From positions 155,434,001 to 155,498,000 of the forward strand of contig OZ038378.1 in assembly GCA_964036045.1 (NCBI GenBank): DNA of 64,000 nt, given 5' to 3'. Position 1 is the stretch's first letter; each line of letters opens with the position of its first letter. Both the position numbers and the translations under genes were made by a program. Positions 22,885 to 64,000 of this stretch are shown in pieces. The notes under the pieces are model-generated. The model made no database searches. It had not been told where the DNA came from and saw only the letters and a list, made by a program, of their open reading frames with translations. This DNA is from Eutreptiella sp. 'Long Island Sound 2002'. Taxonomy: Eukaryota; Protista; Euglenida.

Positions 22885-22914
22885 GCAACAACAACAACAG
22901 CAACAACAACAACC

Positions 22915-22974
<60 letters not shown>

Positions 22975-22976
22975 GC

Positions 22977-23032
<56 letters not shown>

Positions 23033-26018: not shown

Positions 26019-27789
26019 CTGCGAGGGGGACGGGGGGCCCCTCGTTAAACCGAGTTTGAGGGCAGTGGGGCGCTCGGGTCGGACCCTCGACGGGCGGCAG
26101 TAGCGCGGCTTGGGGCGTGGAGCAGGAGCCTTCCCCTGTGCCTGGCACCGAATGGGCATTCGAGAGGTCACCGAGGCATTGAGGAGGCTCGCCAAGATGG
26201 GCTGGGTGCTCGCAATGTGCCGCAGCAAACCCAGGTCACCAGCAAGCGTAGTCTCGGACGCCATCTTGGCCGTACCTGCACACATCAAGAGGCTACAGTA
26301 CACACCCAACAGGGCTTTGATGGCCTTAACGACTATGCGAGGAGAGAGCGATCCAAGGAGACTACAATAAACCAGAAGTAGTTTTTGAACTCGTCCACTT
26401 GCACAGACCGCAGAAACTGTTTTTTTCCCCAAACCGGCTTGCAAAAATTGTTTAACTCATCCTCAGCAAAGCGCAACGGCAATATACACAGCAGAACAGT
26501 TGGATCAATGCACTTCCAGACAGGGTTCTCACCCCGGTCCATCTGATCATAGTTGATGACCGCCAGGTTGTACCTTGCTTCGGCTTAGCATTCAACATTC
26601 AACATACAACTGCTCTTTGACCTCCTGTTGCAATTGCATTGTTCATGTTGTTACTGCGTCACGCATGATGCACTGTGTCTCAGGGGATCCTGGGATGTAT
26701 GTACCGTATCAAGTTCGAACCTGGTCGTATCCTGGAAAAAGGGGGGCGGAGTACCCCACCCGCGATGCCTTTGCATTGCCAGTGCTGGGTTCTCGGCACA
26801 GCCAGCAACTCATCCCATACCCCACAACCACAAGGCGCACAACATTGCGACGATGCAGGATTGCAGAAAGCTGTACACAAAGCTGTGCCTTTGATCATCA
26901 CCAAAGCTGACGTGCACACTGAGAGTCCTGTTCAGGGTTTTTGCTTCGAGCTTGGGTCTAGCATATTTTCATTGTTCTTAATTTGAATCTGAGGCACCCA
27001 GGGCTGTGGAATAGAAGCCAACAATTGCACATGGTTGCTTTTTGGGGCAGGCTTTGGAACGGCCTTGGCCAGGGGCTTAGGAATGGGTTTGGGCTCCTGG
27101 GCTCCTTTCCTTCAGAACAAAATCATCCTTTGCGACATGCAGCCTACCCTCAAAAACATGACCCCATCCCCAAAGCCCACATGCCATTTTTTCCCATCCT
27201 GCTGAAAATCATTCCACGATTGCACATTACACGGATGTGGGTAACAGCCATGCCATAAACAGCAAATGGTCAGTCGTTAAAAAAAGCAGATCAAAATGTG
27301 AACCAATGGCCGTAACTCTCAAGTAAAATGTTGCAATTTCCACAGACAACCCTAACAATCATCAAACAGCCCCTCTGTCTGATCCATCGCCTCAAAATAA
27401 TGTTGAAAAAACGGTTTTTGCCACAGGAATAAATTTCGCTCCGGCTTTAGTTCACATAAGATCCGAAAATTGCTGTGGTAAGTTTCACATACAGGGGGGG
27501 GGGGGGGGGCTGGCCCGGCGTGCACCTGGCGCGCTACTTTTGTACCAAGTATTCCAACTTTAGCCCCAGTTCTACCCTCCCCTGAGGGGGAATGTTTGCC
27601 CGGCGCGCTACTTTTCTATTAACTATCCCGACTTCAGCCCCAGATTTACCCTCTCATGGAGAAGCCCCCCAAGTAGACCACATTGCACTGCACACCTTCC
27701 CTACAAAGCACGTTGCAAAATAAAGCAATATCTGTGACTTCAACCACTGCAACTGTCATTTGTAGTGTAATTAACAAACAACATTGGTC

Positions 27790-27885
27790 CCACAAGTGTG
27801 GGTGTCAATACATTCATTACAATAGTGCTCCTTACACTCATCACAAACTGCGACGGTGGAGCGCCTTTGGCAACACAAAACACAC
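27790..27885 (-). pseudogene. B-box-type zinc-finger coding relic (also at ~41252-41347 and ~54706-54801)
   Basis: CVLC-CQRRSTVAV-CDEC-KEHY-CNEC-IDT-H fits C-x2-C...C-x2-C-x4-C-x2-C-x3-H; no ATG-initiated frame evident. Confidence 0.55.
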
Positions 27886-27903
27886 ACTTCCGCCTCATCC
27901 TCT

Positions 27904-28006
27904 GTGGATTGTGAGTCCCTAACCCCAACTCGAGGGGCCACGCAACAAAGCGTGGATTGTGAGTCCCTAACCCCAACTCGAGGGGCCACGCAACAAAGCG
28001 TGGATT
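27904..28006. repeat. 48-bp direct repeat x2 (present in all three units)
   Basis: GTGGATTGTGAGTCCCTAACCCCAACTCGAGGGGCCACGCAACAAAGC at 27904 and 27952. Confidence 0.95.
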
Positions 28007-30313
28007 CAAAGATTGTCCCGGTTTCCTCAATAGCACCGGAAGGTTGGGGCCCAAACGAGGGTGGAAATGCTACGTCACCCCTGCATTCTCGGGGGTCCCC
28101 AACAAAGGAGACAAAATCAGAAGTCAAAACCTACGCCGGGGGGTCACCATGATGCTCCTAGTATCTCAAAGTGTGGGTCCCTAGTACAGCCAGGCGCCCA
28201 AATAGCTGCACTGTGCTAAGTGCGCCCCCTTAGCGCACCCCCTAAAAGGTCACCGGTGGGGCACGTGTCCAAAAAGATGCCCGGCGCGCGCCCGGCGCGC
28301 CCCTGAGAAGCCTCCCAAGCAAACCAGAATCAACCGCAAACCTTTCCAGACCAATTTTGTAAATTCCACTTGCTCAACACATATGACATGGATTGTGCCT
28401 AATAAACAATTTCACATGTGTACACTCCGCACAATAATTTCAACTACATGCACCACAAACTGTGGTGGTGTGCTTCTAACAGCACAATACACAAACCCCA
28501 ACGTCATCCCCTCCATCATCTTGTATGGCAGCTGAGTTGCTTGCATCAGCAGTTTTCTGAACATGAGGGGCAACATGTTCCCATGGTACATAAGGGGGGT
28601 AATGGACCAACGTGCCATTCTATCTCCCAATGAAGGCACAATGAAATGAATACGGTCCCGGTACGCCCCTTCATGGCCCCCAGCCTCAAAATCAAACCGA
28701 CCAGCTTGTGTGTGAGATGGTCCGTACCTTCCCCATGTTAAGACATGCCATCTGAGGGGAAAATGAAATGGCTACATAACCCCTGCATTCTCTGCAGAGT
28801 GTGGAGGAATCAGAGTGGTTGCTTAGTACAGTGCTGGTCACGGGCATTTTGGCCTTAAAAGATGCCCAGTGCACTAACGCATCCCCTCTACCTCCTAGAT
28901 CTACTACGTGAACACAATGGCACAAATAGTGGAACACACATCATCGTCCAAAAAGCATGTGGTAAGTTTTGCACCAAACTGATTTGCCAAGTTTCCTAGA
29001 ATGAAACAGACCCGTCCGAAGCCCCCGCCCCCCCGCCCACACACAGAGGCCAAGTTCTTGCACTGCGTGCGCACTACGTGCATACTGCGCACGCAGAGGC
29101 TGGGATACTCACCCAAGAATACCTGTCACCTGTCTAGTAGCACGGGGAAGCAGCAAAGCCCACATGAGAAAAACGAAACTGCCTTCAACTTGGTAATCAA
29201 CTGTCTTTATGAACAAGCCACTCAGCCTTGTGGTTGTTCTTCCAAAAATCAAAATGGGCCCTATGGAATTCATTGAGGAAGAGGACCCGCTCAAGGGGTC
29301 GACATTTTCGGAGACTCATGGGTGGGGGCGGGGTTGAGGGCCACCGGTCCTTGTATTGATTTAAGATTGCCACCTCCTTAGCGTGCATGGCCTTCAACTT
29401 ACTCTTCACCACATCATGGTACCGAATGCTTGGATGTACTTCAACGGAGCCTCCTCCATGCTTTGAGGGGTCCTCGTCCTTCTTTTTTCCCACTCGTGCT
29501 TTGCCACCACTCTAGAATTGATGCCCGGCGCGCACCCCGTGCGCTAACGCCCATGCAGGGGAGGAAATAGGGGGAAATGGTTGAAAATGGGCAAAAATGG
29601 TAGACAATTCAAATATGCCACATCCTGAATGCTTAGGAAGCTAAAAAAAACCCCGGTACGGAACCAAAAACTTGTGAAAAGGGGTTGAAACTAGGGTTCG
29701 AGTGCGTGCATGGCATTCCCACACACTTGTACCAAGCAAATGAGGACTTTTCTAGATCCAGTCACCCTGCTGATTCCTAGGGCATGGGGTGTAGGCCCTG
29801 GTGGCGCATAGCTGCGTTGGTTGTCATGCAATGTTGAGCCTTTGGGACCTTGGACTGCTGTGTGTGTGTGTGCCCCAAGTGGTGGGCAGATGGTTGACCG
29901 GAGCAATTTACACCGGATCTCACGAGAGCTCGCGCTTGCTGCAGCTGATCCGCTCGTACCAACTGTGCATCGGTTGCTTGGGAGGGTTGAAGGCCATGGA
30001 CACAGCGAGGGCTCACTGTGGTGGGCATCATTTCTGGCACTGCTTCTCTTTTTGAGCTTCCGAAGATCCGCACCGCGCGTGCACCGTGCAGACAGCAACC
30101 CTTTTGGAACCAAATTGTCCTATTTCATTAGTTGTGACCATCCAACTATATCCTGGGCGCATACATTGCAGATTTGGTCATTTGATGCATCGATGGGACG
30201 TCCGTGCTTCCCTTAATGTGGGCCATCTAATGTTGTGTTTCACGATCAGTAAGGTATTGTGGGACAGAAAATGTTTTTATGGCGGGTGTGTTAGATATAA
30301 CGACGAATGGTGG

Positions 30314-30521
30314 GAGCATGTGATGTACGAGAACGGGCATGTGTCTAGGACGAGTCCAACCATTCTCCCCTTCCCCTCCCCACTAATTAGGTCTCACCCC
30401 TCTCAAGGGGCCTTCAGCCCACTTGTACTGCGCGCGCGCGGGGGGTCGCGTCTCAACACAAGAATTTGTCTCCTCTGTGCTGCATGGGAATGCGGGAACG
30501 TGGTGCGGGTGAGGAGAATAT
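30314..30521. repeat. ~205-bp direct repeat R, left copy (right copy 39463-39674; unit 2: ~43787 and ~52920)
   Basis: GAGCATG.GATGTACGAGAACGGGCATGTGTCTAGGACGAGTCC...GGTGCGGGTGAG(GAG)AATATT occurs twice per unit, ~9.15 kb apart. Confidence 0.92.
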
Positions 30522-31170
30522 TTTTTTTGCTCAGACTCACAAGTTCATCGTAAGTGCTCGGCCAGACGGGCTGGATCAGTAATGACAGTGTAAGTACAAC
30601 ATATGTTGTCCCGTGCGATACCTGGGCCGCATACCACCCGTGGTGGCGGGACGTATATTTGAAACTCACCTGTAACCTGTCATCCGCTCATGCAGTATCA
30701 GAAACTGCCGAGCCACCGGGGCAACGAAGAAAGAAAAACAGTAAATGAGAAAAAGTCTGCTGTGAGAAAAAGAGAGTAGCTTGCCTGGCGTCTCTGGTGG
30801 GATTATGTCCTTCATGTAACTCATGTACGTGGGCGCTTGATTGTCCATTGTGCTCTCTGGTCTTCAGGTCCACTGCGTTTTCTGCCCCTGGGGATATTCA
30901 TCTGCTCGACGCTGGATGAGCATGCAAATGTCCGATCCCGCTGTGGATCAACGAAACCACAATATTCAGAAACACAGTGTAGGCACAAAAAAACCACCCT
31001 TTTTTGCCTCCTTGCCTGCCTTTGGTCTGAACCCACCAAGTGACAACTGACAGCACACCAGCAGACATCCGGCGTGTGCGCAACATTCCAGCATTGTTGC
31101 TCACGGTGCCTTGCCGCTGATTGTGCAGCTGTTGTGGAGTACATTGTGCGCAGCACAACGATAATTCTGC

Positions 31171-31907
31171 ATGCAACAATTTGTCTGAAACTTTTCTATT
31201 TAGAATTCTTGGCCCAGACCAAGATGAGCTGGCCTAGACTGGTCACTGCACCAAATTAGGTAGGGGAAATGCAATAGCAAGGCGAACATGCACCGGATGT
31301 CCAGCACACAGCTCGCAATGCCCATAAATCCACCGGGACTTGCGTGGCGCCACCCACGTCCAAGCACAACTCTGGAGGCTCTGAGAGGTTGGTGAGAAAG
31401 AGAAAAGATGCAATGGAAAGATAAATCTTAATGCAACAATTTGTCTGAAACTTTTCTATTTAGAATTCTTGGCCCAGACCAAGATGAGCTGGCCTAGACT
31501 GGTCACTGCACCAAATTAGGCAGGGGAAATGCAGTAGCAAGGCGAACATGTACCGGATGTCCAGCACACAGCTCGCAATGCCCACAAATCCACCGGGACT
31601 TGCGTGGCGCCACCCACGTCCAAGCACAACTCTGGAGGCTCTGAGAGGTTGGTGAGAAAGAGAAAAGATGCAATGGAAAGATAAATCTTAATGCAACAAT
31701 TTGTCTGAAACTTTTCTATTTAGAATTCTTGGCCCAGACCAAGATGAGCTGGCCTAGACTGGTCACTGCACCAAATTAGGCAGGGGAAATGCAGTAGCAA
31801 GGCGAACATGCACCGGATGTCCAGCACACAGCTCGCAATGCCCACAAATCCACCGGGACTTGCGTGGCGCCACCCACGTCCAAGCACAACTCTGGAGGCT
31901 TTGAGAG
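31171..31907. repeat. 260-bp internal tandem repeat: ~2.8 copies in unit 1, ~1.8 in units 2 (44641-45117) and 3 (58095-58571)
   Basis: ATGCAACAATTTGTCTGAAA starts at 31171, 31431 and 31691; only two starts in each of the other units. Confidence 0.95.
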
Positions 31908-32152
31908 GCTTAGCCCCCTAACCAGGCATCCTTCAGGTGTGCTTGGCACGGCACGAGCCCAGGGGGAAGGCAACAACTGTCTTGACCGTAATCCCTCTGA
32001 CGAGTGATGGCGACAGGGTGCTGCAGGCTTCAGGGGGTCAATAGGGGGCAGCCCCTCCTCTTGCCGTGTTTGTTTCCGGCCTCCTGCCAATGTGCTGCCC
32101 CTCTTGCCCATCTCTGTGCCGCGCATCCAAACTCCCTCGCCCCATACTCTAC

Positions 32153-32980
32153 CTGGAGCTGGAAAGGGGAGATGCTCTTGCTCTTCGCCTGCATCACGGC
32201 AGCATGGGCCAGCTGCTTGCACCCAAGTTTGATCAGGTGATTATCGTTGTCGCTCAGCTTTTTCAGGCAGTGCAGGTCGTTGATGACGAACTTCAAATAC
32301 TGCAGCCGCAACAAGAAGGTCACCGCCTTCACCTTCGTCTCACTCATCCCCCTCCAGAGCAGCAAGTACCGCACCGACTCCAAAAATGCTCGATACGCTG
32401 ATGCCTGGCACCGTGGGGGCGTCCGGAAGGCACTGCAAGGTTCGTCACAGGTTTCCGCAATCGCGGCCTGCAACGGTTTGCCTGCAAGCCACGGCAGCAG
32501 CCAGTCGTAGACGTTCTCCACATGCTTCTCTGGGCCATCTCCTATCATGCTCATCAGGAAGTACATCCACCATGAATCATCCTGCATCCTGTCATCGGGG
32601 ATGTTATCAATGGCAATGCAGCCTTTGTACTTGATTTTGCCATCCAGCGTTGCCACCGAGGGATGATACGGGTTCTCGTCCCCACCCGCGCACGCCACAA
32701 AGCGGAATCCTGACGCCTTCTTGATCAGCATGAAGACAATCTTCTTCGGTGAGGGCAACAGCAGTGCCTGTCCCACTCCCAACTCCCCGATGTTCTTCTT
32801 CAAGAACTTCAACAGCGCGGTCAGCCGCGACACACTCTGCAGGGTCCGCTGCCGCAGGCCGAAGCCCACTGCGCGCTCCAGGTCCTTGAGGGTGGAGAGC
32901 AGACAATCCTGGTCCTCTTCCATGAAACTTCCCATCCACTGCGACTGCTCCTTCGCCATGCGCGCCATCGAAAAGTGCAG
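32153..32980 (-). pseudogene. Orphan exon X, copy 1; splice acceptor removed by a 27-bp deletion
   Basis: Same frame as the copy 2 exon with GT donor at 32152; lacks 46191-46217 of copy 2, which contains the AG. Confidence 0.75.
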
Positions 32981-34966
32981 GGCGAGGCTGCGAGCACGGG
33001 GTGATGGAAAAGGCAGGAACAAGGGGTGGTGGGGAAGGAGGATGAGGGAGGGGCGGTAAGAAATGGAGGGCAGCAAGTAGGAGGGGGCTGTGCGCAAATA
33101 GTTTGGGTTGTGTGCCTCAGGGCAAAGAGTTGCGGGTCACCAAGTAATACGCTGCCCCGTTACGTGGCCCTAGCCCAGGGCACACTCCTGCTTCGGGTTT
33201 GTTTTGGCGGCACTGCAAGGGTGCCCAGTGGGCGACGACGCCTGTCCTGCTGTTGTGGATGATTTTTGTGGGTGAGCTCCCGCTGTCGCTCAGGCCAACC
33301 CTGGCAACGGAGGTGTTCCACGGCGAGTATGGCGGAGAACTGCAGTGCGCCTCTGATGGGTATAACCCCCGCAGAGGCACATGGATGCACACCCTTGGCC
33401 CCGGGGCCTTGGTTGTAGTGACCAGGTATCCGCCTCCCACGCAAGGGACCGGGCGGCCCTGACCACAGTGCCAGGCCACCCTTACCTTTCCCCACAAGGC
33501 AAAATGCCTGGAAACGCCGCACACCACCGATGAGCGACACTTGGCGTTTCGGACCCTCCTGGCCTATTTTCTCAGGCTTTATGGGAACCCCCACCCCACC
33601 CCGCACCCCAGAGTAGACCCTGGCCGACAAGCAGGCCACACAGAAGACATGGCACAACACCGATTGTGTTACATGTGAACCGACCAGCTTTCATGGAATT
33701 CCAGAGGTCTCATCCACACCGTTTGTCTGTCAGCTGCACACATCTTGACTCACGTGGCTTCAAGTACCGCATGTATAATGCGGCCTCTCCTTCCTGTTTG
33801 ACACGAGTGAGCGTCTCAGAGAGTTGCTCTAGGGTCCTCAACATTCACCCATTGTTTATTCGATGGGTGCCCTGGTTTGAGACAGGGATTCAGGCTGTCC
33901 TTCGAGCCCCTGAATCTCCTCTGCCAGATCATAGCTCCCTCGCTGAACAACACACAGGCCACAGAGAAGACCTGAAATGCAGCACAGCGAGCAGCCCACA
34001 CAGTTCAGGCTCAACCACCGGCGGTTGTTCTGTTCCCTTGCTGTTTCGGGGGGGGGGTACCATAAAGGTGCAGTGTGAGAGGGGGATTCGCGGCTACCAG
34101 CAGGGGCCTCTCTTGCTGGAGGGTTTTTCCCCATCACTGCCACGTGCATCACGCTATCGCTTACCTCCCGGATCTTGCAATGACCCATTTTCTGCCTTAT
34201 GCGCTGACATGTACCAAAGCTCTCCTGTAAGCAGCGTTCTCGTTGGGTATCAAAGAGGAAGAGTCTAAGCAACAGCGCAAGTGAGGGCGGGACTCGGGAA
34301 TGTGTCGCTTTTGACACCCGAGACCCTGCAGAAGCAAGTTGCAGAGGGAGGAGGGGCCGTGGCATCCCACCTCCTTTTGAGGTGGCTCCACGAGGGCGCC
34401 TCCTGCAGATCAATGGACCTGCTGAGGCCTGAAGACCACTGCATCCGGTTGCTAGTGATGGCGTGTTGAACCTCCCCCAATTCCCGTGTCCTCCGCAGGG
34501 ATCTCCTGGGCCCTCCGCACTGGCCCCTGAGCTTGCGCTCTTGTTCAGTGACCCGTGCGGTGCTGCATCTTTGGGTGACTTGTGGAGGGGCAAGCCAAAA
34601 AGATGGCGGCGGCGGGGGAGGTTGTGGGGCTGACCCTGAGGACATAATTAGGTCGTCCACTGCAGGCATTTGTGCCAGAGATGAGGACAGCCTGAGAAAC
34701 CACCTGAAGCAAGTCCAAGGTCAAAGGGCCGAGACTGTTGGTAAGAAGAAGTCACATTGGCGTCCGACAAGAGAGACAAGGTATAAGAGTTGCGAAAAAA
34801 GGGGGGAGGGATTAGGAATCCGGGGGCACAGTGAGGAAGGCATCGTGAGGGCAGAGGGGGAGGAATGGGAGGAAGTGGGGGGTATGATGCAAGAAGTATG
34901 GGGGCAATTGGTACTAGCAGCCAAACGGCGTAGGCAGTATGCGACAGACACGCAATGTCGGATGAC

Positions 34967-35990
34967 CTTGAGGAAATTCATGGGGTCATTCACCTCACCA
35001 AAAGCGGTGTCAACAAGGACCGGGTCGCAGAACTCCCCCCAAAACGCAGGGTCGGCCCAGATTGGATGCGGCTTCCGGAACAGCGCCTTCAGAGTGAACT
35101 GCTGCCGCAGCTCCTGCTGGGCCTTCTCGGCATCCTTCACGCACTGCGAGTACAGGCTGTCCACGTAAGTTCCCGCGCGCACCTGGGAGCCCGACAGCGC
35201 GGTGTTGGCTATGAACTTGACGTACTTGATGCAGACCTCTGTGCTGGCCCCGCCACCAAAAAGCACGATGCCCTCGGGGTCCACGGCGAACCTGCCGCCA
35301 TGGATTGTGATCTCCTTCTTGGCCACGACCGCACACTTCTTACCCCCCACATACGTGGTCATGGTATCGGACCCAACTGTCACCACAACTCTCGTCCACT
35401 TCTCTAAAGGGACCGACCCGTCTTGCCCAAACGACTCATCCAGCCCCAGTCCCAAGTTCGCGCTGACGAGGCATTCGCCAACCTCTGTCGGGTACGGCCA
35501 GCCGGTGGTGTACACAGACAACCCCTGCGAAGGGGGTGCCGCTGGCAGCAGCATGTCCATAATCAGCGTGTACAACTGCACCTTCTCCCGCCTCTCTGGG
35601 AGTTGATCTTGATGCATCTCATCTTTTGCCAAAGGCTCCTCGGTCTCCTCCCCGCGGGCCTTAGCTCTACGTGCGCGGCGCTCCTGCATCTTCTTCTCCT
35701 TCTCTTTTTGCTTCTTCCAGATCATCTGCTGTGTTTCAATGCCCAACCGCACCTTCAAATATGCGCCGGGCTGCAGTCTCAGCATCGTTGCCTTGGTGTT
35801 CATTTCCTCCAGATTGCCCTCGCCCACCACCTGGGCCTTCTGGGGCAACGTACCATCCCGGAAGTCAAAGACACGCGTGTTTGGCTCCTCTTTTTTCTTC
35901 TTGTGGTCCGCCCGTTGATCCTTGACTCCGGGCACCTCGTAAAAATGCAGAGTGTCAGCTGCATCCGTCCACATCGTGGTATTCTCCGTT
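34967..35990 (-). pseudogene. LamG/concanavalin-A-like domain coding segment (also 48205-49228 and 61658-62681) fused to the 3' end of the secreted gene
   Basis: YTLIMDMLL...GECLVSANLGLG...VPLEKWTRVVVTV...TYVGG...GRFAVDPEGIVLFGG is LamG-like. Probable GT donor after NFLK followed by pyrimidine-rich intron-like sequence; no clear acceptor at the 5' side. Confidence 0.6.
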
Positions 35991-37740: not shown

Positions 37741-37935
37741 GCATGGTCTCCTGAGAGTCTTCAGGAACGTAAATGGGTTTTGTCGTACGAGGGCCACGAC
37801 GTCTCCACAACAGTCCTCGAAAAGGCCCTCACCGACCCTTCCATCAATGGGGACGTCCGGATGTTGCTGAACGAGCTTCAGCTCAATCCTTCTCTTCGTG
37901 CCACCGACAGGCCCCAGCAGCCTGCAGGATCTTAA
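37741..37935 (+). pseudogene. Clamp-loader (RFC-family AAA+) lid-domain fragment
   Basis: Hand translation PESLQERKWVL(S/W)YEGHDVSTTVLEKALTDPSINGDVRMLLNELQL matches the RFC consensus L.ERL..I...EG..V....LE......GD.R..LN.LQ; ends in TAA. Confidence 0.6.
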
Positions 37936-52200: not shown

Positions 52201-52877
52201 TCAGGGTAACCGTTGGCATGTGATGAAAGGGACTTGTCGCTCTGAGATTCCATATAGAAGTAGTAGTTATAAGCAGGAGAAAGCTCCACCTCCGGGGGAA
52301 ATGTCCACCTCTTGCCACCGAATGATGAGTCATCGACTGACACTGAGCTGGCGATGAGACTGGCCGATGTGGACAGGTCAGCGGGTGTACCAGTGTATGG
52401 CGCGGACAAGATGTGGAGAGTGCCGACCGCATAATGTGCCGGGGACTGACCGTAAACGACAAAATTGAACTGGATGTTATTGTAGGGGACTAGCACATTC
52501 AATTTCGGTATCGGAATCGAAACGGCCTGCCCGTAGAACTGCCCGTCCGTCTGCCCGCTGTTTGTGAGACCGCTGTTAACCGGCCAATTAAGGATGATGG
52601 GCGCAACTCCGCAAGCAGGGAGATCGAACGTCCCACCATTGACTGGGCATTGAACATTGCGCGTGTCTAGATTGCCCTTATAACCCTCAGCGCACGTCAG
52701 TAAATTCCGGGTGTCAGCACTTGCTGCGAGCGCACCAACGGTACAGCCAGCCTCACCGTTGTTGCAGCTGGTGTCTGTGCTCAATGTTCCCACGGGAAGA
52801 GTGCAGAGGGGTTGGCCTGATGCAACCGAGTTCATGTAAAGCAGGATGAGAAAACACGAAATCCTGAACAAGAGCAT
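49272..52877 (-). pseudogene. Secreted Ig-like/TSP1 pseudogene, copy 2
   Basis: Same frames and the same three lesions as copy 1; the insert is 219 bp longer. Confidence 0.8.
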
Positions 52878-55800
52878 GTTGCTTCCAGCAAAAAGGAGCC
52901 CAAAAATAATAGACACTCAGAGCATGGGATGTACGAGAACGGGCATGTGTCTAGGACGAGTCCAACCATTCTCCCCTTCCCCTCCCCACTAATTAGGTCT
53001 CACCCCTCTCAAGGGGCCTTCCGCCCACTTCTACTGCGCGCGGCGGGGGGGGGGGGTCGCGTCTCAACGCAAGAATTTGTCTCCTCTTTGCTGCATGGGA
53101 ATGCGGGAACGTGGTGCGGGTGAGAATATTGTGGTACATTGTGGTCACCAAACTCAACATCCCAGGGGCGGATGTCGCAGAGTTGTTGCGGCATGGGTGG
53201 TCGTGGGCATACAACCTTCTTATGAGTGTACCATTTCCCCCTACCTTGTGTTGCAAGAGGGGTGGGTGCTTCTACCCAGTGGTACAACGAATTTAGCCCT
53301 TTTTGGACAACTTCATCTGCCACATTGTGGACTGTGGCCGACTGGGTACCCCTGGGCAAGTCCGGGTCCCCAACTTTGTGGTAGACTAGTCCAGAGGTAG
53401 TTAACGGGGGTGGCGGTGGCATGGCCGGCAGGTAGAATATTGGTGTCTTAGTTGGGGTGGAGACATGCCGCATCAATCCTGTAGCCTTACTTGGAGTGCT
53501 GTACGGGCTCTAGAAGGAATCCATCATGCCGCTTGGGCCACGGATGCTCAGTTGGACGGCGGAGTCCCCGCCGCTAAATTATGTTACATACCCTGGACCC
53601 TGTAAAACCTCCACTAGGAGATCCAACTTGCTGATCAAGACTTAATACTACGACTGAGCTGGGTCTGTATGGTTCTCCTCAAAAGGGTTGAAAAACCGCT
53701 CATTTTCATGTCAAAAGCCAGCAACTCATCCCTTACCCCACAACCACAAGGTGCACAACATTGCGATGATGCAGGATTGCAGAAAGCTGTACACAAAGCT
53801 GTGCCTTTGATCATCACCAAAGCTGACGTGCACACTGAGAGTCCTGTTCAGGGTTTTTGCTTCGAGCTTGGGTCTAGCATATTTTCATTGTTCTTAATTT
53901 GAATCTGAGGCACCCAGGGCTGTGGAATAGAAGCCAACAATTGCACATGGTTGCTTTTTGGGGCAGGCTTTGGAACGGCCTTGGCCAGGGGCTTAGGAAT
54001 GGGTTTGGGCTCCTGGGCTCCTTTCCTTCAGAACAAAATCATCCTTTGCGACATGCAGCCTACCCTCAAAAACATGACCCCATCCCCAAAGCCCACATGC
54101 CATTTTTTCCCATCCTGCTGAAAATCATTCCACGATTGCACATTACACGGATGTGGGTAACAGCCATGCCATAAACAGCAAATGGTCAGTCGTTAAAAAA
54201 AGCAGATCAAAATGTGAACCAATGGCCGTAACTCTCAAGTAAAATGTTGCAATTTCCACAGACAACCCTAACAATCATCAAACAGCCCCTCTGTCTGATC
54301 CATCGCCTCAAAATAATGTTGAAAAAACGGTTTTTGCCACAGGAATAAATTTCGCTCCGGCTTTAGTTCACATAAGATCCCAAAATTGCTGTGGTAAGTT
54401 TCACATACAGGGGGGGGGGGGGGGGCTGGCCCGGCGTGCACCTGGCGCGCTACTTTTGTACCAAGTATTCCAACTTTAGCCCCAGTTCTACCCTCCCCTG
54501 AGGGGGAATGTTTGCCCGGCGCGCTACTTTTCTATTAACTATCCCGACTTCAGCCCCAGATTTACCCTCTCATGGAGAAGCCCCCCAAGTAGACCACATT
54601 GCACTGCACACCTTCCCTACAAAGCACGTTGCAAAATAAAGCAATATCTGTGACTTCAACCACTGCAACTGTCATTTGTAGTGTAATTAACAAACAACAT
54701 TGGTCCCACAAGTGTGGGTGTCAATACATTCATTACAATAGTGCTCCTTACACTCATCACAAACTGCGACGGTGGAGCGCCTTTGGCAACACAAAACACA
54801 CACTTCCGCCTCATCCTCTGTGGATTGTGAGTCCCTAACCCCAACTCGAGGGGCCACGCAACAAAGCGTGGATTGTGAGTCCCTAACCCCAACTCGAGGG
54901 GCCACGCAACAAAGCGTGGATTCAAAGATTGTCCCGGTTTCCTCAATAGCACCGGAAGGTTGGGGCCCAAACGAGGGTGGAAATGCTACGTCACCCCTGC
55001 ATTCTCGGGGGTCCCCAACAAAGGAGACAAAATCAGAAGTCAAAACCTACGCCGGGGGGTCACCATGATGCTCCTAGTATCTCAAAGTGTGGGTCCCTAG
55101 TACAGCCAGGCGCCCAAATAGCTGCACTGTGCTAAGTGCGCCCCCTTAGCGCACCCCCTAAAAGGTCACCGGTGGGGCACGTGTCCAAAAAGATGCCCGG
55201 CGCGCGCCCGGCGCGCCCCTGAGAAGCCTCCCAAGCAAACCAGAATCAACCGCAAACCTTTCCAGACCAATTTTGTAAATTCCACTTGCTCAACACATAT
55301 GACATGGATTGTGCCTAATAAACAATTTCATATGTGTACACTCCGCACAATAATTTCAACTACATGCACCACAAACTGTGGTGGTGTGCTTCTAACAGCA
55401 CAATACACAAACCCCAACGTCATCCCCTCCATCATCTTGTATGGCAGCTGAGTTGCTTGCATAAGCAGTTTTCTGAACATGAGGGGCAACATGTTCCCAT
55501 GGTACATAAGGGGGGTAATGGACCAACGTGCCATTCTATCTCCCAATGAAGGCACAATGAAATGAATACGGTCCCGGTACGCCCCTTCATGGCCCCCAGC
55601 CTCAAAAGCAAACCGACCAGCTTGTGTGTGAGATGGTCCGTACCTTCCCCATGTTAAGACATGCCATCTGAGGGGAAAATGAAATGGCTACATAACCCCT
55701 GCATTCTCTGCAGAGTGTGGAGGAATCAGAGTGGTTGCTTAGTACAGTGCTGGTCACGGGCATTTTGGCCTTAAAAGATGCCCAGTGCACTAACGCACCC

Positions 55801-58800
55801 CCTCTACCTCCTAGATCTACTACGTGAACACAATGGCACAAATAGTGGAACACACATCATCGTCCAAAAAGCATGTGGTAAGTTTTGCACCAAACTGATT
55901 TGCCAAGTTTCCTAGAATGAAACAGACCCGTCCGAAGCCCCCGCCCCCCCGCCCACACACAGAGGCCAAGTTCTTGCACTGTGTGCGCACTGCGTGCGCA
56001 CTACGTGCATACTGCGCACGCAGAGGCTGGGATACTCACCCAAGAATACCTGTCACCTGTCTAGTAGCACGGGGAAGCAGCAAAGCCCACATGAGAACAA
56101 CGAAACTGCCTTCAACTTGGTAATCAACTGTCTTTATGAACAAGCCACTCAGCCTTGTGGTTGTTCTTCCAAAAATCAAAATGGGCCCTATGGAATTCAT
56201 TGAGGAAGAGGACCCGCTCAAGGGGTCGACATTTTCGGAGACTCATGGGTGGGGGCGGGGTTGAGGGCCACCGGTCCTTGTATTGATTTAAGATTGCCAC
56301 CTCCTTAGCGTGCATGGCCTTCAACTTACTCTTCACCACATCATGGTACCGAATGCTTGGATGTACTTCAACGGAGCCTCCTCCATGCTTTGAGGGGTCC
56401 TCGTCCTTCTTTTTTCCCACTCGTGCTTTGCCACCACTCTTGAATTGATGCCCGGCGCGCACCCCGTGCGCTAACGCCCATGCAGGGGAGGAAATAGGGG
56501 GAAATGGTTGAAAATGGGCAAAAATGGTAGACAATTCAAATATGCCACATCCTGAATGCTTAGGAAGCTAAAAAAAACCCCGGTACGGAACCAAAAACTT
56601 GTGAAAAGGGGTTGAAACTAGGGTTTGAGTGCGTGCATGGCATTCCCACACACTTGTACCAAGCAAATGAGGACTTTTCTAGATCCAGTCACCCTGCTGA
56701 TTCCTAGGGCATGGGGTGTAGGCCCTGGTGGCGCATAGCTGCGTTGGTTGTCATGCAATGTTGAGCCTTTGGGACCTTGGACTGCTGTGTGTGTGAGTGC
56801 CCCAAGTGGTGGGCAGATGGTTGACCGGAGCAATTTACACCGGATCTCACGAGAGCTCGCGCTTGCTGCAGCTGATCCGCTCGTACCAACTGTGCATCGG
56901 TTGCTTGGAAGGGTTGAAGGCCATGGACACAGCGAGGGCTCACTGTGGTGGGCATCATTTCTGGCACTGCTTCTCTCCTTGAGCTTCCGAAGATCCGCAC
57001 CGCGCGTGCACCGTGCAGACAGCAACCCTTTTGGAACCAAGTTGTCCTATTTCATTAGTTGTGACCATCCAACTATATCCTGGGCGCATACATTGCAGAT
57101 TTGGTCATTTGATGCATCGATGGGACGTCCGTGCTTCCCTTCATGTGGGCCATCTAATGTTGTGTTTCACGATCAGTAAGGTATTGTGGGACAGAAAATG
57201 TTTTCATGGCGGGTGTGTTAGATATAACGACGAATGGTGGGAGCATGTGATGTACGAGAACGGGCATGTGTCTAGGACGAGTCCAACCATTCTCCCCTTC
57301 CCCTCCCCACTAATTAGGTCTCACCCCTCTCAAGGGGCCTTCAGCCCACTTGTACTGCGCGCGCGCGGGGGTCGCGTCTCAACACAAGAATTTGTCTCCT
57401 CTTTGCTGCATGGGAATGCGGGAACGTGGTGCGGGTGAGAATATTTTTTTTTGCTCAGACTCACAAGTTCATCGTAAGTGCTCGGCCAGACGGGCCGGAT
57501 CAGTAATGACAGTGTAAGTACAACATATGTTGTCCCGTGCGATACCTGGGCCGCATACCACCCGTGGTGGCGGGACGTATATTTGAAACTCACCTGTAAC
57601 CTGTCATCCGCTCATGCAGTATCAGAAACTGCCGAGCCACCGGGGCAACGAAGAAAGAAAAACAGTAAATGAGAAAAAGTCTGCTGTGAGAAAAAGAGAG
57701 TAGCTTGCCTGGCGTCTCTGGTGGGATTATGTCCTTCATGTAACTCATGTACGTGGGCGCTTGATTGTCCATTGTGCTCTCTGGTCTTCAGGTCCACTGC
57801 GTTTTCTGCCCCTGGGGATATTCATCTGCTCCACGCTGGATGAGCATGCAAATGTCCGATCCCGCTGTGGATCAACGAAACCACAATATTCAGAAACACA
57901 GTGTAGGCACAAAAAAACCACCCTTTTTTGCCTCCTTGCCTGCCTTTGGTCTGAACCCACCAAGTGACAACTGACAGCACACCAGCAGACATCCGGCGTG
58001 TGCGCAACATTCCAGCATTGTTGCTCACGGTGCCTTGCCGCTGATTGTGCAGCTGTTGTGGAGTACATTGTGCGCAGCACAACGATAATTCTGCATGCAA
58101 CAATTTGTCTGAAATTTTTCTATTTAGAATTCTTGGCCCAGACCAAGATGAGCTGGCCTAGACTGGTCACTGCACCAAATTAGGCAGGGGAAATGCAGTA
58201 GCAAGGCGAACATGCACCAGATTTCCAGCACACAGCTCGCAATGCCCATAACTCCACCGGGACTTGCGTGGCGCCACCCACGTCTCAGCACAACTCTGGA
58301 GGCTCTGAGAGGTTGGTGAGAAAGAGAAAAGATGCAATGGAAAGATAAATCTTAATGCAACAATTTGTCTGAAACTTTTCTATTTAGAATTCTTGGCCCA
58401 GACCAAGATGAGCTGGCCTAGACTGGTCACTGCACCAAATTAGGCAGGGGAAATGCAGTAGCAAGGCGAACATGTACCGGATGTCCAGCACACAGCTCGC
58501 AATGCCCACAAATCCACCGGGACTTGCGTGGCGCCACCCACGTCCAAGCACAACTCTGGAGGCTTTGAGAGGCTTAGCCCCCTAACCAGGCATCCTTCAG
58601 GTGTGCTTGGCACGGCACGAGCCCAGGGGGAAGGCAACAACTGTCTTGACCGTAATCCCTCTGACGAGTGATGGCGACAGGGTGCTGCAGGCTTCAGGGG
58701 GTCAATAGGGGGCAGCCCCTCCTCTTGCCGTGTTTGTTTCCGGCCTCCTGCCAATGTGCTGCCCCTCTTGCCCATCTCTGTGCCGCGCACCCAAACTCCC

Positions 58801-58816
58801 TCGCCCCATACTCTAC

Positions 58817-59647
58817 CTGGAGCTGGAAAGGGGAGATGCTCTTGCTCTTCGCCTGCATCACGGCAGCATGGGCCAGCTGCTTGCACCCAAGTTTGATCAG
58901 GTGATTATTGTTGTCGCTCAGCTTTTTCAGGCAGTGCAGGTCGTTGATGACGAACTTCAAATACTGCAGCCGCAACATGAAGGTCACCGCCTTCACCTTC
59001 GTCTCACTCATCCCCCTCCAGAGCAGCAAGTACCGCACCGACTCCAAAAATGCTCGATACGCTGATGCCTGGCACCGTGGGGGCGTCCGGAAGGCACTGC
59101 AAGGTTCGTCACAGGTTTCCGCAATCGCGGCCTGCAACGGTTTGCCTGCAAGCCACGGCAGCAGCCAGTCGTAGACGTTCTCCACATGCTTCTCTGGGCC
59201 ATCTCCTATCATGCTCATCAGGAAGTACATCCACCATGAATCATCCTGCATCCTGTCATCGGGGATGTTATCAATGGCAATGCAGCCTTTGTACTTGATT
59301 TTGCCATCCAGCGTTGCCACCGAGGGATGATACGGGTTCTCGTCCCCACCCGCGCACGCCACAAAGCGGAATCCTGACGCCTTCTTGATCAGCATGAAGA
59401 CAATCTTCTTCGGTGAGGGCAACAGCAGTGCCTGTCCCACTCCCAACTCCCCGATGTTCTTCTTCAAGAACTTCAACAGCGCGGTCAGCCGCGACACACT
59501 CTGCAGGGTCCGCTGCCGCAGGCCGAAGCCCACTGCGCGCTCCAGGTCCTTGAGGGTGGACAGCAGACGATCTTGGTCCTCTTCCATGAAACTTCCCATC
59601 CACTGCGACTGCTCCTTCGCCATGCGCGCCATCGAAAAGTGCAGCAC
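58817..59647 (-). CDS. Orphan exon X, copy 3 (intact acceptor and donor)
   Basis: AG at 59649-59648, GT at 58816-58815; 364-aa track ORF nearly identical to copy 2. Confidence 0.7.
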
Positions 59648-62600
59648 CTGTCGCGGAGGAGGAAGCAGAAGGGCGAGGCTGCGAGCACGGGGTGATGGAA
59701 AAGGCAGGAACAAGGGGTGGTGGGGAAGGAGGATGAGGGAGGGGCGGTAAGAAATGGAGGGCAGCAAGTAGGAGGGGGCTGTGCGCAAATAGTTTGGGTT
59801 GTGTGCCTCAGGGCAAAGAGTTGCGGGTCACCAAGTAATACGCTGCCCCGTTACGTGGCCCTAGCCCAGGGCACACTCCTGCTTCGGGTTTGTTTTGGCG
59901 GCACTGCAAGGGTGCCCAGTGGGCGACGACGCCTGTCCTGCTGTTGTGGATGATTTTTGTGGGTGAGCTCCCGCTGTCGCTCAGGCCAACCCTGGCAACG
60001 GAGGTGTTCCACGGCGAGTATGGCGGAGAACTGCAGTGCGCCTCTGATGGGTATAACCCCCGCAGAGGCACATGGATGCACACCCTTGGCCCCGGGGCCT
60101 TGGTTGTAGTGACCAGGTATCCGCCTCCCACGCAAGGGACCGGGCGGCCCTGACCACAGTGCCAGGCCACCCTTACCTTTCCCCACAAGGCAAAATGCCT
60201 GGAAACGCCGCACACCACCGATGAGCGACACTTGGCGTTTCGGACCCTCCTGGCCTATTTTCTCAGGCTTTATGGGAACCCCCACCCCACCCCGCACCCC
60301 AGAGTAGACCCTGGCCGACAAGCAGGCCACACAGAAGACATGGCACAACACCGATTGTGTTACATGTGAACCGACCAGCTTTCATGGAATTCCAGAGGTC
60401 TCATCCACACCGTTTGTCTGTCAGCTGCACACATCTTGACTCACGTGGCTTCAAGTACCGCATGTATAATGCGGCCTCTCCTTCCTGTTTGACACGAGTG
60501 AGCGTCTCAGAGAGTTGCTCTAGGGTCCTCAACATTCACCCATTGTTTATTCGATGGGTGCCCTGGTTTGAGACAGGGATTCAGGCTGTCCTTCGAGCCC
60601 CTGAATCTCCTCTGCCAGATCATAGCTCCCTCGCTGAACAACACACAGGCCACAGAGAAGACCTGAAATGCAGCACAGCGAGCAGCCCACACAGTTCAGG
60701 CTCAACCACCGGCGGTTGTTCTGTTCCCTTGCTGTTTCGGGGGGGGGGTACCATAAAGGTGCAGTGTGAGAGGGGGATTCGCGGCTACCAGCCGGGGCCT
60801 CTCTTGCTGGAGGGTTTTTCCCCATCACTGCCACGTGCATCACGCTATCGCTTACCTCCCGGATCTTGCAATGACCCATTTTCTGCCTTATGCGCTGACA
60901 TGTACCAAAGCTCTCCTGTAAGCAGCGTTCTCGTTGGGTATCAAAGAGGAAGAGTCTAAGCAACAGCGCAAGTGAGGGCGGGACTCGGGAATGTGTCGCT
61001 TTTGACACCCGAGACCCTGCAGAAGCAAGTTGCAGAGGGAGGAGGGGCCGTGGCATCCCACCTCCTTTTGAGGTGGCTCCACGAGGGCGCCTCCTGCAGA
61101 TCAATGGACCTGCTGAGGCCTGAAGACCACTGCATCCGGTTGCTAGTGATGGCGTGTTGAACCTCCCCCAATTCCCGTGTCCTCCGCAGGGATCTCCTGG
61201 GCCCTCCGCACTGGCCCCTGAGCTTGCGCTCTTGTTCAGTGACCCGTGCGGTGCTGCATCTTTGGGTGACTTGTGGAGGGGCAAGCCAAAAAGATGGCGG
61301 CGGCGGGGGAGGTTGTGGGGCTGACCCTGAGGACATAATTAGGTCGTCCACTGCAGGCATTTGTGCCAGAGATGAGGACAGCCTGAGAAACCACCTGAAG
61401 CAAGTCCAAGGTCAAAGGGCCGAGACTGTTGGTAAGAAGAAGTCACATTGGCGTCCGACAAGAGAGACAAGGTATAAGAGTTGCGAAAAAAGGGGGGAGG
61501 GATTAGGAATCCGGGGGCACAGTGAGGAAGGCATCGTGAGGGCAGAGGGGGAGGAATGGGAGGAAGTGGGGGGTATGGTGCAAGAAGTATGGGGGCAATT
61601 GGTACTAGCAGCCAAACGGCGTAGGCAGTATGCGACAGACACGCAATGTCGGATGACCTTGAGGAAATTCATGGGGTCATTCACCTCACCAAAAGCGGTG
61701 TCAACAAGGAACGGGTCGCAGAACTCCCCCCAAAACGCAGGGTCGGCCCAGATTGGATGCGGCTTCCGGAACAGCGCCTTCAGAGTGAACTGCTGCCGCA
61801 GCTCCTGCTGGGCCTTCTCGGCATCCTTCACGCACTGCGAGTACAGGCTGTCCACGTAAGTTCCCGCGCGCACCTGGGAGCCCGACAGCGCGGTGTTGGC
61901 TATGAACTTGACGTACTTGATGCAGACCTCTGTGCTGGCCCCGCCACCAAAAAGCACGATGCCCTCGGGGTCCACGGCGAACCTGCCGCCATGGATTGTG
62001 ATCTCCTTCTTGGCCACGACCGCACACTTCTTACCCCCCACATACGTGGTCATGGTATCGGACCCAACTGTCACCACAACTCTCGTCCACTTCTCTAAAG
62101 GGACCGACCCGTCTTGCCCAAACGACTCATCCAGCCCCAGTCCCAAGTTCGCGCTGACGAGGCATTCGCCAACCTCTGTCGGGTACGGCCAGCCGGTGGT
62201 GTACACAGACAACCCCTGCGAAGGGGGTGCCGCTGGCAGCAGCATGTCCATAATCAGCGTGTACAACTGCACCTTCTCCCGCCTCTCTGGGAGTTGATCT
62301 TGATGCATCTCATCTGTTGCCGAAGGCTCCTCGGTCTCCTCCCCGCGGGCCTTAGCTCTACGTGCGCGGCGCTCCTGCATCTTCTTCTCCTTCTCTTTTT
62401 GCTTCTTCCAGATCATCTGCTGTGTTTCAATGCCCAACCGCACCTTCAAATATGCGCCGGGCTGCAGTCTCAGCATCGTTGCCTTGGTGTTCATTTCCTC
62501 CAGATTGCCCTCGCCCACCACCTGGGCCTTCTGGGGCAACGTACCATCCCGGAAGTCAAAGACACGCGTGTTTGGCTCCTCTTTTTTCTTCTTGTGGTCC

Positions 62601-62724
62601 GCCCGTTGATCCTTGACTCCGGGCACCTCGTAAAAATGCAGAGTGTCAGCTGCATCCGTCCACATCGTGGTATTCTCCGTTGGGTCTGGTTCGGCCTCGG
62701 CTGCCGCTGCTTCCAGCTCCTGGA

Positions 62725-64000
62725 TCAGCTCCTCATCCGATTCATCATCCGATAAGGAGACAACGCGGCATGGTTGATACTCGCAATCGTCAGAAACCGC
62801 GGACCTTGCAAAGCTGCTGTTGTCCTCCATTCCAGCAGATTTGTCCGCGGCAGGACGCTCAATACTTTTGTTTGTCGCAGTGATGTGGGAACCGATTGCC
62901 CTAGAACAGTGGACGTCAATTGCCCTTGAACACTGGAGGTCGATTGGCCTTGAATACTTGAAACCAGCGGTACTTGAACAGACGACGTCCGTGGGACTGG
63001 ACCAGAGGAAATGAATGGGCCTTGTACGGAGGAAGTGAATGGGACGGCAGCGGTGCTGACGAAGTGGCCTTGAGCACTGGAAATCAGTTGAACGGACGAA
63101 AAGCGACAATCAGGGAGCCGGCAAATCCTACTCTCTGCTGACGGTCCGTGGCCATCGCAGTCAGTCCCCCCATATCGGGGGACTGGGCTGCTGCACTCTC
63201 TTGTGCGTTGTTGGACCCCGAAACCGCATGGGCCCCATTCACCCCAAGGCCCGTAGCGGCCGTCCACGGCGCATGTGTCGCAGGGTCGGCTCTTGACGGC
63301 CGCGGGACACTTGGCTCCTCCGTTCTGCGGCGGCACCGCCACGGCGCGGGTGCGCGTGCGCATTCCGGTGGTGCAGCATCGACTCTACTCGGACCACCGA
63401 TCGTACCCACAATCAACTGAGCACCCAAAGACCCCAATGAAGCTCTGGCCTTGAATAGTGGAAATCGATTGGCCTTGGACACTGGCCGCCGGTTGTGCCG
63501 GGCTGGGGCATGTTGCACTGCCGACGTTGGAGAAACCAGCATATCCCTTGGCACAAACAACCGACTTGGATTTCAACGTCTCAAGCGTGCATCCACCGGC
63601 CCCTTCAGTGCACACCGCGTTGTTGTTGTTGTTGTTGTTGTCCTTGCGGATGCTGTACCCCGTTGGGAGGACACACTTGGGCACAGCTTTGATACTGAGG
63701 GTGGCTTGATTTGAGGTCGCACCATTGTTGTCCGTCACAGTGTACTGGATAGTAACGGTGCCAACGTATCCTTGTACAGGGGTGAATGTGACCACTCCGT
63801 TCGCATCCACAGTGGCAGTTCCCTGACCTTTGATTGTGGTTGTTGTTTGCCGACCGCGAGCTGCAGGGTCCAGGTTCACCCTGCTTGGGTCAATGGTTCC
63901 ATCAGGATCAACGTCATTGCCAACCAAACTCACGGTCCCTGAAGTGCCGACGAAGTGCTGACTGGTATCACCACCGCATCAGGGGCAGCTTGTGGGGGGC
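62725..64000 (-). pseudogene. Secreted Ig-like/TSP1 pseudogene, copy 3 (3' part only; continues beyond the window)
   Basis: ORFs 62725-63363 and 63385-63933 match copies 1 and 2, including the TAG and the 11-bp duplication. Confidence 0.8.

Follow-up and report, generated by a model that had tools for sequence, protein, structure and literature searches.

Layout of the array

From position 26800 to its end, the window (the whole 64,000-nucleotide stretch analysed here) is occupied by a head-to-tail array of 2.77 units, each of ~13.46 kb. Self-BLAST, TRF markers and comparison between the units all recover this arrangement, and the tandem array described in an earlier, sequence-only reading of this DNA is thus real. 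Read directly, the left junction with unique sequence at 26800 is clean and without microhomology. The gene content found in the flank is one ORF with an RNase III domain and one TPR ORF. The units lie as follows, unit 2 serving as the coordinate reference for gene parts.

26800-64000: tandem array, 2.77 units; far end outside the window
26800-40260, minus strand: unit 1, edge unit and the most diverged (unit comparison)
40261-53715, minus strand: unit 2 (self-BLAST and unit comparison)
53716-64000, minus strand: unit 3, cut by the window end (self-BLAST and unit comparison)

Relative to unit 2, unit 1 shows 47 SNPs and 9 indels. Among the indels, its 260-bp repeat is present in one more copy and its 219-bp repeat in one copy fewer, and stretches of 11 and 27 bp are deleted. 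Between units 2 and 3 the count falls to 11 SNPs, with two indels of 1 bp each. Divergence of the edge unit is about three times that of the inner pair, and the copy number of the nested VNTRs varies among the units.

Each unit holds only two gene-like bodies, both on the minus strand. Read along that strand, ~0.84 kb of upstream DNA is followed by an adhesin-like gene, then by a two-exon gene, then by ~5 kb of non-coding DNA with VNTRs. The features outside the genes are these.

40261-45239: rest of unit 2, ~5 kb; no family match, no codon-usage signal in bulk scoring
44630-45118: 260-bp VNTR of unit 2, within the remaining 5 kb
41366-41468: 48-bp repeat of unit 2, within the remaining 5 kb
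52920-53130: 211-bp element directly upstream of the adhesin-like ATG, with a second, direct copy inside the unit (43787-43991, 94% identity)

The unit had been described as a scrambled assembly of fragments from several genes. Family matches came from the adhesin-like gene and its intact neighbour alone, and that description does not hold. Clamp-loader pieces were not found, the P-loop lying in no real ORF, and the ORF that resembles a zinc finger, taken before as a zinc-finger/Tudor-like relic, fails to match any Pfam family even with the threshold relaxed to E<=1. The claimed lack of a transposase, integrase, Rep or capsid was borne out in unit frames of >=55 aa, and Rep/helicase Pfam families were likewise missing from flank frames of >=85 aa. 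Between 26000 and 41500, a search for the terminal inverted repeats of Pack-MULEs returned a 19-nt palindrome as the only inverted repeat. Helitron-type ends (TC and a CTRR-hairpin) are present on neither strand at the flank-array or unit-unit junctions, only the left array end being visible. There is also no relic of the dinoflagellate spliced leader (0 matches at <=3 mismatches), and tRNA and Rfam scans found nothing. A scan for bacterial promoters and terminators was set aside as irrelevant to a eukaryote.

A two-exon gene in each unit

The downstream gene body has two exons on the minus strand and encodes a 708-aa protein. When the transcript ORF P0001 is mapped to the array, the coding frame is open, with no stops, in all three units.

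48205-49377, minus strand: unit 2 exon 1, 391 codons, ATG at 49377; acidic N-terminus and LamG-type jelly roll
46194-48204, minus strand: unit 2 intron, 2,011 bp, GT...AG
45240-46193, minus strand: unit 2 exon 2, 317 codons and stop; part of the alpha/beta-helical domain
61658-62830, minus strand: unit 3 exon 1; protein identical to P0005 and P0010
58694-59647, minus strand: unit 3 exon 2; one D to N substitution relative to unit 2
34967-36139, minus strand: unit 1 exon 1; open frame, 4 substitutions relative to unit 2
32030-32983, minus strand: unit 1 exon 2; open frame, with a 27-bp deletion, private to this unit, at the 5' edge

The earlier reading had recognised a LamG segment and had concluded that the units contain no complete gene. 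The segment proves to be the first exon of the intact 708-aa gene, and spliced MMETSP ORFs match the gene (the translation of unit 2 exon 2 equals those of P0001 and P0005). The intron is bounded by GT...AG in units 2 and 3 (2,011 and 2,010 bp, respectively); its open frames in unit 2 have no Pfam match. In unit 1, the 27-bp deletion takes the polypyrimidine tract and AG acceptor of the intron together with the first codon of exon 2, and this copy of the gene is probably splice-defective. Since the deletion is private to unit 1, the statement that all inactivating lesions are shared between the units has to be given up. Coding SNPs between the units (3 synonymous against 6 non-synonymous, which are tiny counts) give no sign of purifying selection on the array copies.

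A decayed adhesin-like gene

Upstream of the intact gene, on the same strand, lies a gene for a secreted, adhesin-like protein with Big_9 and TSP1 domains. Fragments of a secreted adhesin-like gene had been reported before, and they do exist: there is an exon for a signal peptide, followed by repeats of Big_9/cadherin-like type and two of TSP1 type, with lesions common to the units. In unit 2 it is made up as follows.

52047-52877, minus strand: first coding block; ATG, signal-peptide-like start, Cys-rich module and start of Big_9 repeat 1
50934-52046, minus strand: insert of ~1.1 kb breaking Big_9 repeat 1; contains the 219-bp VNTR
51016-51631: 219-bp (73-codon) VNTR in the insert
50483-50866, minus strand: Big_9/cadherin-like repeat 2, intact (Big_9 E=9e-14)
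49935-50525, minus strand: Big_9 repeat 3 (Big_9 E=5e-12), then a second Cys-rich module
49932-49934, minus strand: in-frame TAG at the conserved Trp of TSP1 repeat 1
49650-49931, minus strand: two TSP1 repeats (TSP_1 33.5 bits, TSP1_spondin)

The domain assignments stand above the Pfam gathering cut-offs (46.9 and 52.6 bits against 23.6 for Big_9; the TSP_1 score against 21.6). The first block also holds a domain of ~200 aa without assignment and shows marginal CCP/sushi similarity. No single uninterrupted frame runs through the adhesin domains: besides the insert in repeat 1 there is a frame shift at the start of Big_9 repeat 3 (~50480-50525), and the TAG interrupts TSP1 repeat 1. The frame shift is common to all three units, the TAG has counterparts at 36694-36696 in unit 1 and 63385-63387 in unit 3, and no canonical splice sites fit to bridge the breaks. 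Because the three lesions are common to the units, decay of this gene came before amplification, and for the adhesin-like gene this part of the earlier reading holds.

The insert is foreign-looking. Its 5' boundary is the end of the first copy (52041-52112) of a 72-bp duplicate whose second copy (50795-50866) lies ~70 bp past the insert's 3' end. It is open for 371 codons in the frame of adhesin exon 1, and may be what had previously been called an orphan exon. The first adhesin ORF, being open through the insert, might still encode a shortened secreted protein and so might not be fully dead; more speculatively, the open frame of the 73-codon VNTR could encode a new repeat protein. Codon-usage log-likelihood is a low-powered measure, although in the positive controls the true frame did come out on top, by a clear margin for the N-terminal domain and Big_9 repeat 3 and only narrowly for repeat 2. 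It placed the correct frame of the first block first. It gave no support to the insert's open frame or to the remaining 5 kb.

Past the TSP1 repeats the frame stays open through a Ser/Val/Gln-rich tail that reaches 49275 and overlaps the intact gene's ATG at 49377. An ORF from a JGI contig (P0168) is 99% identical in this region.

Transcript ORFs and further copies

P0001, an MMETSP ORF of 708 aa flagged 'complete', is found as two exons in each of the three units. MMETSP ORFs with this flag lie one residue away from each of units 2 and 3; in the exon-by-exon comparison, a second MMETSP ORF, P0005, shows a single residue of difference to either unit. Across the spliced MMETSP and JGI ORFs, of which there are several variants, the distance to the window copies is 1-4 residues, and none shows full-length identity between transcript ORF and window copy. 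From the 1-residue differences we infer that these particular units are expressed. A spliced full-length functional mRNA spanning the unit had been named as an observation that would tell against a fragment mosaic. A complete spliced ORF does lie inside every unit; it spans 4.1 kb, not 13.46 kb.

Taking units, transcript ORFs and other contigs together, at least 7 distinct protein variants exist, among them at least 3 distinct full-length transcript ORFs. Three exon-1 variants (P0012, P0014 and P0015), none of them encoded in the window, stand together on one 605-kb ENA contig. With a 641-kb ENA contig included, variants beyond those of the window are found on two contigs; the contigs possibly belong to the same assembly and are possibly independent.

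Family and fold of the 708-aa protein

In the protein, a LamG-type jelly roll and an alpha/beta-helical domain are accompanied by an acidic tail. Single-sequence AlphaFold prediction was useless (pLDDT 39.5), and the alignment-based model (pLDDT 82.9, pTM 0.68) was used instead. Pfam gives a weak Laminin_G_3 match only. Relatives are nonetheless numerous: 425 at E<=1e-3, the best at 1e-61, and for 27 family representatives E ranges between 1e-61 and 1e-30. The array protein keeps 39 of the 42 strongly conserved family columns, including the invariant His498, and none of the substitutions among the units hits any of these 42. A metagenome scan with P0001 found no relatives.

In many relatives the module stands at the N-terminal end of a giant eukaryotic protein (4-7 thousand residues); the family as a whole is of undescribed function (PMC12615304). 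Residues ~185-660 align with the giants' N-terminal 150-645 at ~30% identity, with E down to 1e-55. The one giant scanned (P0018, 4,760 aa) carries DUF3638, DUF3645, thioredoxin and WWE domains. The 708-aa protein is a stand-alone form of the LamG-jelly-roll and alpha/beta-helical module that heads these giants.

Sequence and profile searches of the PDB with the 708-aa protein returned nothing significant, and matches to NEL ligases (E 0.35-0.5) were disregarded. Foldseek against the PDB retrieved only generic concanavalin-A-like jelly rolls (sialidase lectin domains, an arabinanase domain and clostridial toxin binding subdomains). For the predicted model these matches represent a common fold and are no evidence of a toxin relationship.

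Origin and maintenance of the array

We consider it highly probable that the array is a tandem segmental duplication, or gene-bearing macrosatellite, in the nuclear genome of this marine protist. There would have been one founding duplication, the adhesin-like gene being damaged already when it took place. Expansion, contraction and homogenisation would then have proceeded via unequal sister-chromatid or homologous exchange and gene conversion, processes that would keep the inner units closer to each other than to the edge unit. The divergence of unit 1 and the copy-number differences of the nested VNTRs back dynamics of this exchange type, and unequal exchange, one of several amplification routes offered before, is the most economical mechanism.

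Alternatively, the founding block may have come from an eccDNA circle that was copied by the rolling-circle mode, reintegrated and later altered by ordinary mutation. Head-to-tail, very similar units and the clean left junction are compatible with such an origin without being diagnostic of it. A single burst, however, predicts roughly equal divergence, whereas the edge unit stands well apart from the inner pair; moreover, the VNTR changes and the several transcript variants fit ongoing exchange. We therefore regard a circle as an unlikely source. Still harder to credit is an assembly artefact, in which a single-copy or two-haplotype locus would have been laid out in tandem. The window does end within the array, and 13-kb repeats of ~99% identity are hard to assemble, but private SNPs, indels and VNTR copy numbers separate the three units. 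The many protein variants, several of them full-length transcript ORFs, and the three additional exon-1 variants on a separate contig likewise speak for true copies.

Least credible of all is a Helitron- or Pack-MULE-like element that captured fragments of several genes, decayed and then amplified, with no function except perhaps as a source of small RNAs: the common adhesin lesions, the foreign-looking insert bordered by the 72-bp duplicate and the ~5 kb per unit without recognisable content would suit it, but there are just two gene bodies on one strand, one of them intact with canonical splicing and matching transcript ORFs, the clamp-loader, zinc-finger and Tudor pieces were not found, terminal inverted repeats are absent, the visible junction has no Helitron-type ends, and Rep, helicase and transposase are absent throughout the window. 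As to small RNAs, long inverted repeats are absent and all units run head-to-tail.

Given a tandem duplication maintained by exchange, the biological effect would be to raise the dose of the 708-aa protein and to multiply its sequence variants. The promoter and leader of the intact gene would be expected within the dead adhesin gene or upstream of it. Combining these points, we tentatively propose, as a speculation rather more doubtful than not, that the protist has amplified a short LamG and alpha/beta-helical module whose many variant units are co-expressed, with the dead adhesin gene serving as promoter and leader. If this were true, the array would be a generator of dosage and diversity for an uncharacterised, widely conserved eukaryotic module.

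What looked like an exotic, fragment-capturing element is recast as an ordinary tandem duplication with a working gene. The dead neighbour would have shared in the amplification as a passenger, perhaps to be used again as a leader. The 708-aa protein offers a compact example, modelled with confidence, of the conserved and functionally undescribed module at the N-terminus of giant eukaryotic proteins.

Comparison with known systems

The array resembles Pack-MULEs and Helitrons in one respect, a single fragmentary resident gene with a foreign-looking insert. It differs from them in having no terminal inverted repeats, Helitron ends, transposase or Rep/helicase, in being no mosaic of many genes and in containing an intact gene.

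The adhesin-like gene can be compared with the TSP1-repeat adhesins of protists and animals and with bacterial-type Big_9/cadherin-like surface proteins. It shares with them a signal-peptide-like start, Cys-rich modules, three Big_9 repeats and two TSP1 repeats. Unlike them it has a reading frame interrupted three times (insert, frameshift, stop codon), has no visible membrane anchor and has a tail that overlaps the start of the next gene.

With the giant eukaryotic proteins the array protein has the N-terminal module and its conserved positions in common. It differs from them in being only 708 aa long, without DUF3638, DUF3645 or any other downstream domain; its nearest relatives are likewise short (856-1,068 aa).

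Tandem gene arrays occur in dinoflagellates and trypanosomatids. Gene-bearing macrosatellites are exemplified by human D4Z4 with DUX4 and by other human macrosatellites (PMC3018141, PMC5687341). The present array is like both kinds in its kb-scale head-to-tail units of very high identity, each with a putatively transcribable ORF, in its diverged edge unit and unstable internal VNTRs, and in the unequal exchange that is presumed to shape it. As to the complete gene per unit that marks such macrosatellites, units 2 and 3 carry the gene with GT-AG splice sites, and unit 1 retains both open exons with the acceptor lost. What sets the array apart is the large 13.46-kb unit, the pairing of a spliced two-exon gene with a dead neighbour, and its marine protist host.

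Structure of the array

Tandem repeat markers (TRF) return every ~13.46 kb, and self-BLAST gives colinear matches from 26800 to the end of the window. Together with a three-way alignment of the units, these results bear out the macrosatellite array described in the sequence-only reading: the array is real in the sequence, well past chance. Coordinates within the unit are those of unit 2.

Units of the array
26800-40260, unit 1
40261-53715, unit 2
53716-64000, unit 3, cut off by the window end

In the three-way alignment units 1 and 2 differ by 47 SNPs and 9 indels, and units 2 and 3 by 11 SNPs and two 1-bp indels, the edge unit being about threefold more diverged than the inner pair. The larger indels are changes in copy number of internal 260-bp and 219-bp VNTRs, nested repeats that differ from unit to unit, and deletions of 11 bp and 27 bp in unit 1. 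The SNPs between units 1 and 2 are unevenly spread, with 27 of the 47 in a 5-kb non-coding part, 6 in the adhesin region and 2 in the intron (chi-square ~12, 4 degrees of freedom, computed by hand from alignment positions), which may reflect patchy gene conversion rather than selection. At the left junction unique sequence passes abruptly into the unit, with no terminal structure.

Each unit carries a two-exon gene

All recognisable content of the unit lies on the minus strand. One open frame, 565 aa long and weakly matched by Laminin_G_3 in Pfam, had been taken for a LamG segment in a unit with no complete gene. The frame instead belongs to an intact two-exon gene, as it matches P0001, an MMETSP transcript ORF of 708 aa that is flagged complete. 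P0001 is found in each unit as two blocks with no stop codons; in units 2 and 3 the blocks are separated by an intron with canonical GT...AG ends (2,011 bp in unit 2 and 2,010 bp in unit 3). The splice sites were set by trying donor and acceptor positions and comparing the translation with P0001; database searches used the window exons singly or P0001 as query.

Exons of the intact gene, unit 2 (splice-site placement against P0001)
49377-48205, minus strand, exon 1
46193-45240, minus strand, exon 2

Spliced genes, and proteins nearly identical to ORFs of the Marine Microbial Eukaryote Transcriptome project, mark the window as eukaryotic; it is not taken for human. Exon-by-exon comparison puts a second transcript ORF, P0005, one residue away from unit 2 and one from unit 3. 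P0001 matches exon 2 of unit 2 at every residue and shows three differences in exon 1. Short JGI contigs carry spliced ORFs, which shows them to be transcript-derived. Among the ENA ORF calls, P0007 and P0011 are encoded exactly by unit 1, P0008 by unit 2 and P0010 by unit 3. A 605-kb ENA contig carries three exon-1 variants that the window does not encode; further units therefore exist, on contigs that may come from the same or from an independent assembly. Counting units, transcript ORFs and ORFs on other contigs, there are at least seven distinct protein variants. Coding changes between units are three synonymous versus six non-synonymous, small numbers that give no sign of purifying selection among the copies.

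In unit 1 both exons are open, but the 27-bp deletion, private to this unit, removes the polypyrimidine tract and AG of the acceptor together with exon 2's first codon, and use of the nearest upstream AG would shift the frame. The disabling lesions are thus not all shared between units, contrary to what had been claimed.

A damaged adhesin-like gene upstream

Directly upstream, on the same strand, is the relic of an adhesin-like gene, which we read frame by frame and never joined or repaired.

Features of the adhesin-like gene, unit 2
52877, minus strand, ATG
52046-50934, minus strand, insert of ~1.1 kb carrying the 219-bp VNTR (break 1)

Reading from the ATG, a signal-peptide-like start comes first, then a module rich in Cys with marginal similarity to CCP/sushi, then a domain without assignment and the beginning of a Big_9 repeat. 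The gene is broken by the insert, which starts directly behind the first of two copies of a 72-bp duplicate, the second lying ~70 bp beyond the insert's 3′ end; by a frame change where the third Big_9 repeat starts (break 2); and by a TAG in place of the conserved Trp of the first TSP1 repeat (break 3). No canonical splice sites able to bridge these breaks were found. All three units share the frame change and the TAG, and the insert occurs in both units that extend that far. Because these lesions are common to the units, the adhesin-like gene decayed before the segment multiplied, and for this gene the proposed order of decay and amplification holds.

The insert (50934-52046 in unit 2, 37778-38174 region in unit 1, minus strand) is itself open for 371 codons in the frame of the adhesin-like gene's first exon, against 4-19 stops in the other five frames. 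One period of its VNTR equals exactly 73 codons, and on another contig copies with 2-4 repeats stay in frame. Codon usage, Pfam homology and the differing C-termini of the copies lend no support to a coding role.

Past the second TSP1 repeat the open frame overruns the ATG of the intact gene. Because this ATG sits inside the tail of the relic, the promoter and leader of the intact gene probably lie in or upstream of the relic. An ORF on a JGI contig is 99% identical to the TSP1 tail, which is compatible with this placement but is not proof of it.

The 708-aa protein and its family

Pfam and PDB sequence searches with P0001 gave no assignment. In an exhaustive search P0001 had 425 relatives sharing ~30% identity, and for 27 of these the E value was below 1e-30; the named ones come from Apiculatamorpha, Paulinella and Batrachochytrium. 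The region that aligns covers, in many of the relatives, N-terminal residues 150-650 of a protein 4,000-7,000 aa long. P0018 (4,760 aa), one of these giants, carries DUF3638, DUF3645, thioredoxin and WWE domains; the literature describes DUF3638 as widespread and without a known function (PMC12615304).

An AlphaFold model built from an alignment of 57 family members is confident (pLDDT 82.9, pTM 0.68) and predicts that the chain opens with a disordered acidic stretch, followed by a jelly roll (~85-315) and then by an alpha/beta plus helical domain (~320-696). Foldseek returned only generic concanavalin-A-like jelly rolls, and a profile search of the PDB gave no significant match. Of the 42 family columns with the strongest conservation, 39 are retained in P0001, among them the invariant His498, and none of the unit-to-unit substitutions falls on these conserved columns.

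Remainder of the unit and the flank

We scanned all stop-to-stop frames of at least 55 aa in the unit, on both strands, against Pfam, and found nothing credible beyond the pieces of the intact and adhesin-like genes. A zinc-finger-looking ORF at 41236-41592 has no Pfam match even at E<=1. The sole P-loop-like string lies inside a 38-codon frame. Codon-usage scoring of the unit's other 5 kb showed no sign of coding, and tRNA and Rfam scans of the window gave no matches. Each unit holds a 211-bp direct repeat (94% identity), at 52920-53130 and 43787-43991 in unit 2 and at 39463-39675 and 30314-30522 in unit 1. One copy lies upstream of the adhesin-like ATG and ends 43 bp from it; the repeat may be a duplicate of the promoter region or a small element of dispersed type.

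Several features were observed in the flank. A pooled Pfam scan of 1-26900 gave one open frame of at least 85 aa with a TPR_12/TPR_10 match (E=4e-8).

Other flank features
2134-3226, 85-bp satellite, 12.9 copies, 96% identity, then a 41-bp A/T-run repeat at 3236-3416
10469-11734, minus strand, open frame encoding a Ribonuclease III domain (E=5e-11), which may be a Dicer/Drosha-like gene fragment or exon; its in-frame 30-bp tandem repeat (11188-11462, 9 copies) also yields a GLTT-repeat match
12000-16000, strongly negative GC skew (-0.19 to -0.41)
13896-14993, plus strand, open frame matching RNase H weakly (E=0.0024, under the Pfam cut-off), which with the skew of 12000-16000 may mark a retroelement remnant
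18905-19749, 36-bp satellite, 23.5 copies, 98% identity, TATG/TGTA-rich motif
22730-23039, CAA microsatellite, ~103 copies, with a degenerate extension to ~23200

Origin of the array

Capture of gene fragments by a Helitron- or Pack-MULE-like element fails on the defining features tested: inverted termini were not found in the unit, nor Helitron-type ends at the junctions examined, and the unit is not a mosaic of many genes, as the description of scrambled gene pieces would have it. Pfam scans of unit and flank frames found no transposase, Rep or integrase, in agreement with the sequence-only reading, whose observations stand in part and whose interpretation is largely replaced.

Segmental tandem duplication fits the absence of mobile-element features, the divergence and deletion of the edge unit and the varying VNTRs. 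After its duplication in tandem the segment would have expanded, and unequal exchange together with gene conversion would have kept its units alike, except for the edge unit. The 708-aa protein would be made at a higher dose and in several co-expressed variants.

The interest of the array rests on a conserved, uncharacterised protein module and on the unexplained open insert. In its workings and by criteria the structure counts as a tandem gene array, or gene-bearing macrosatellite. Tandem gene arrays are well known in protist genomes. Gene-bearing macrosatellites are likewise well known, human D4Z4/DUX4 among others (PMC3018141, PMC5687341).
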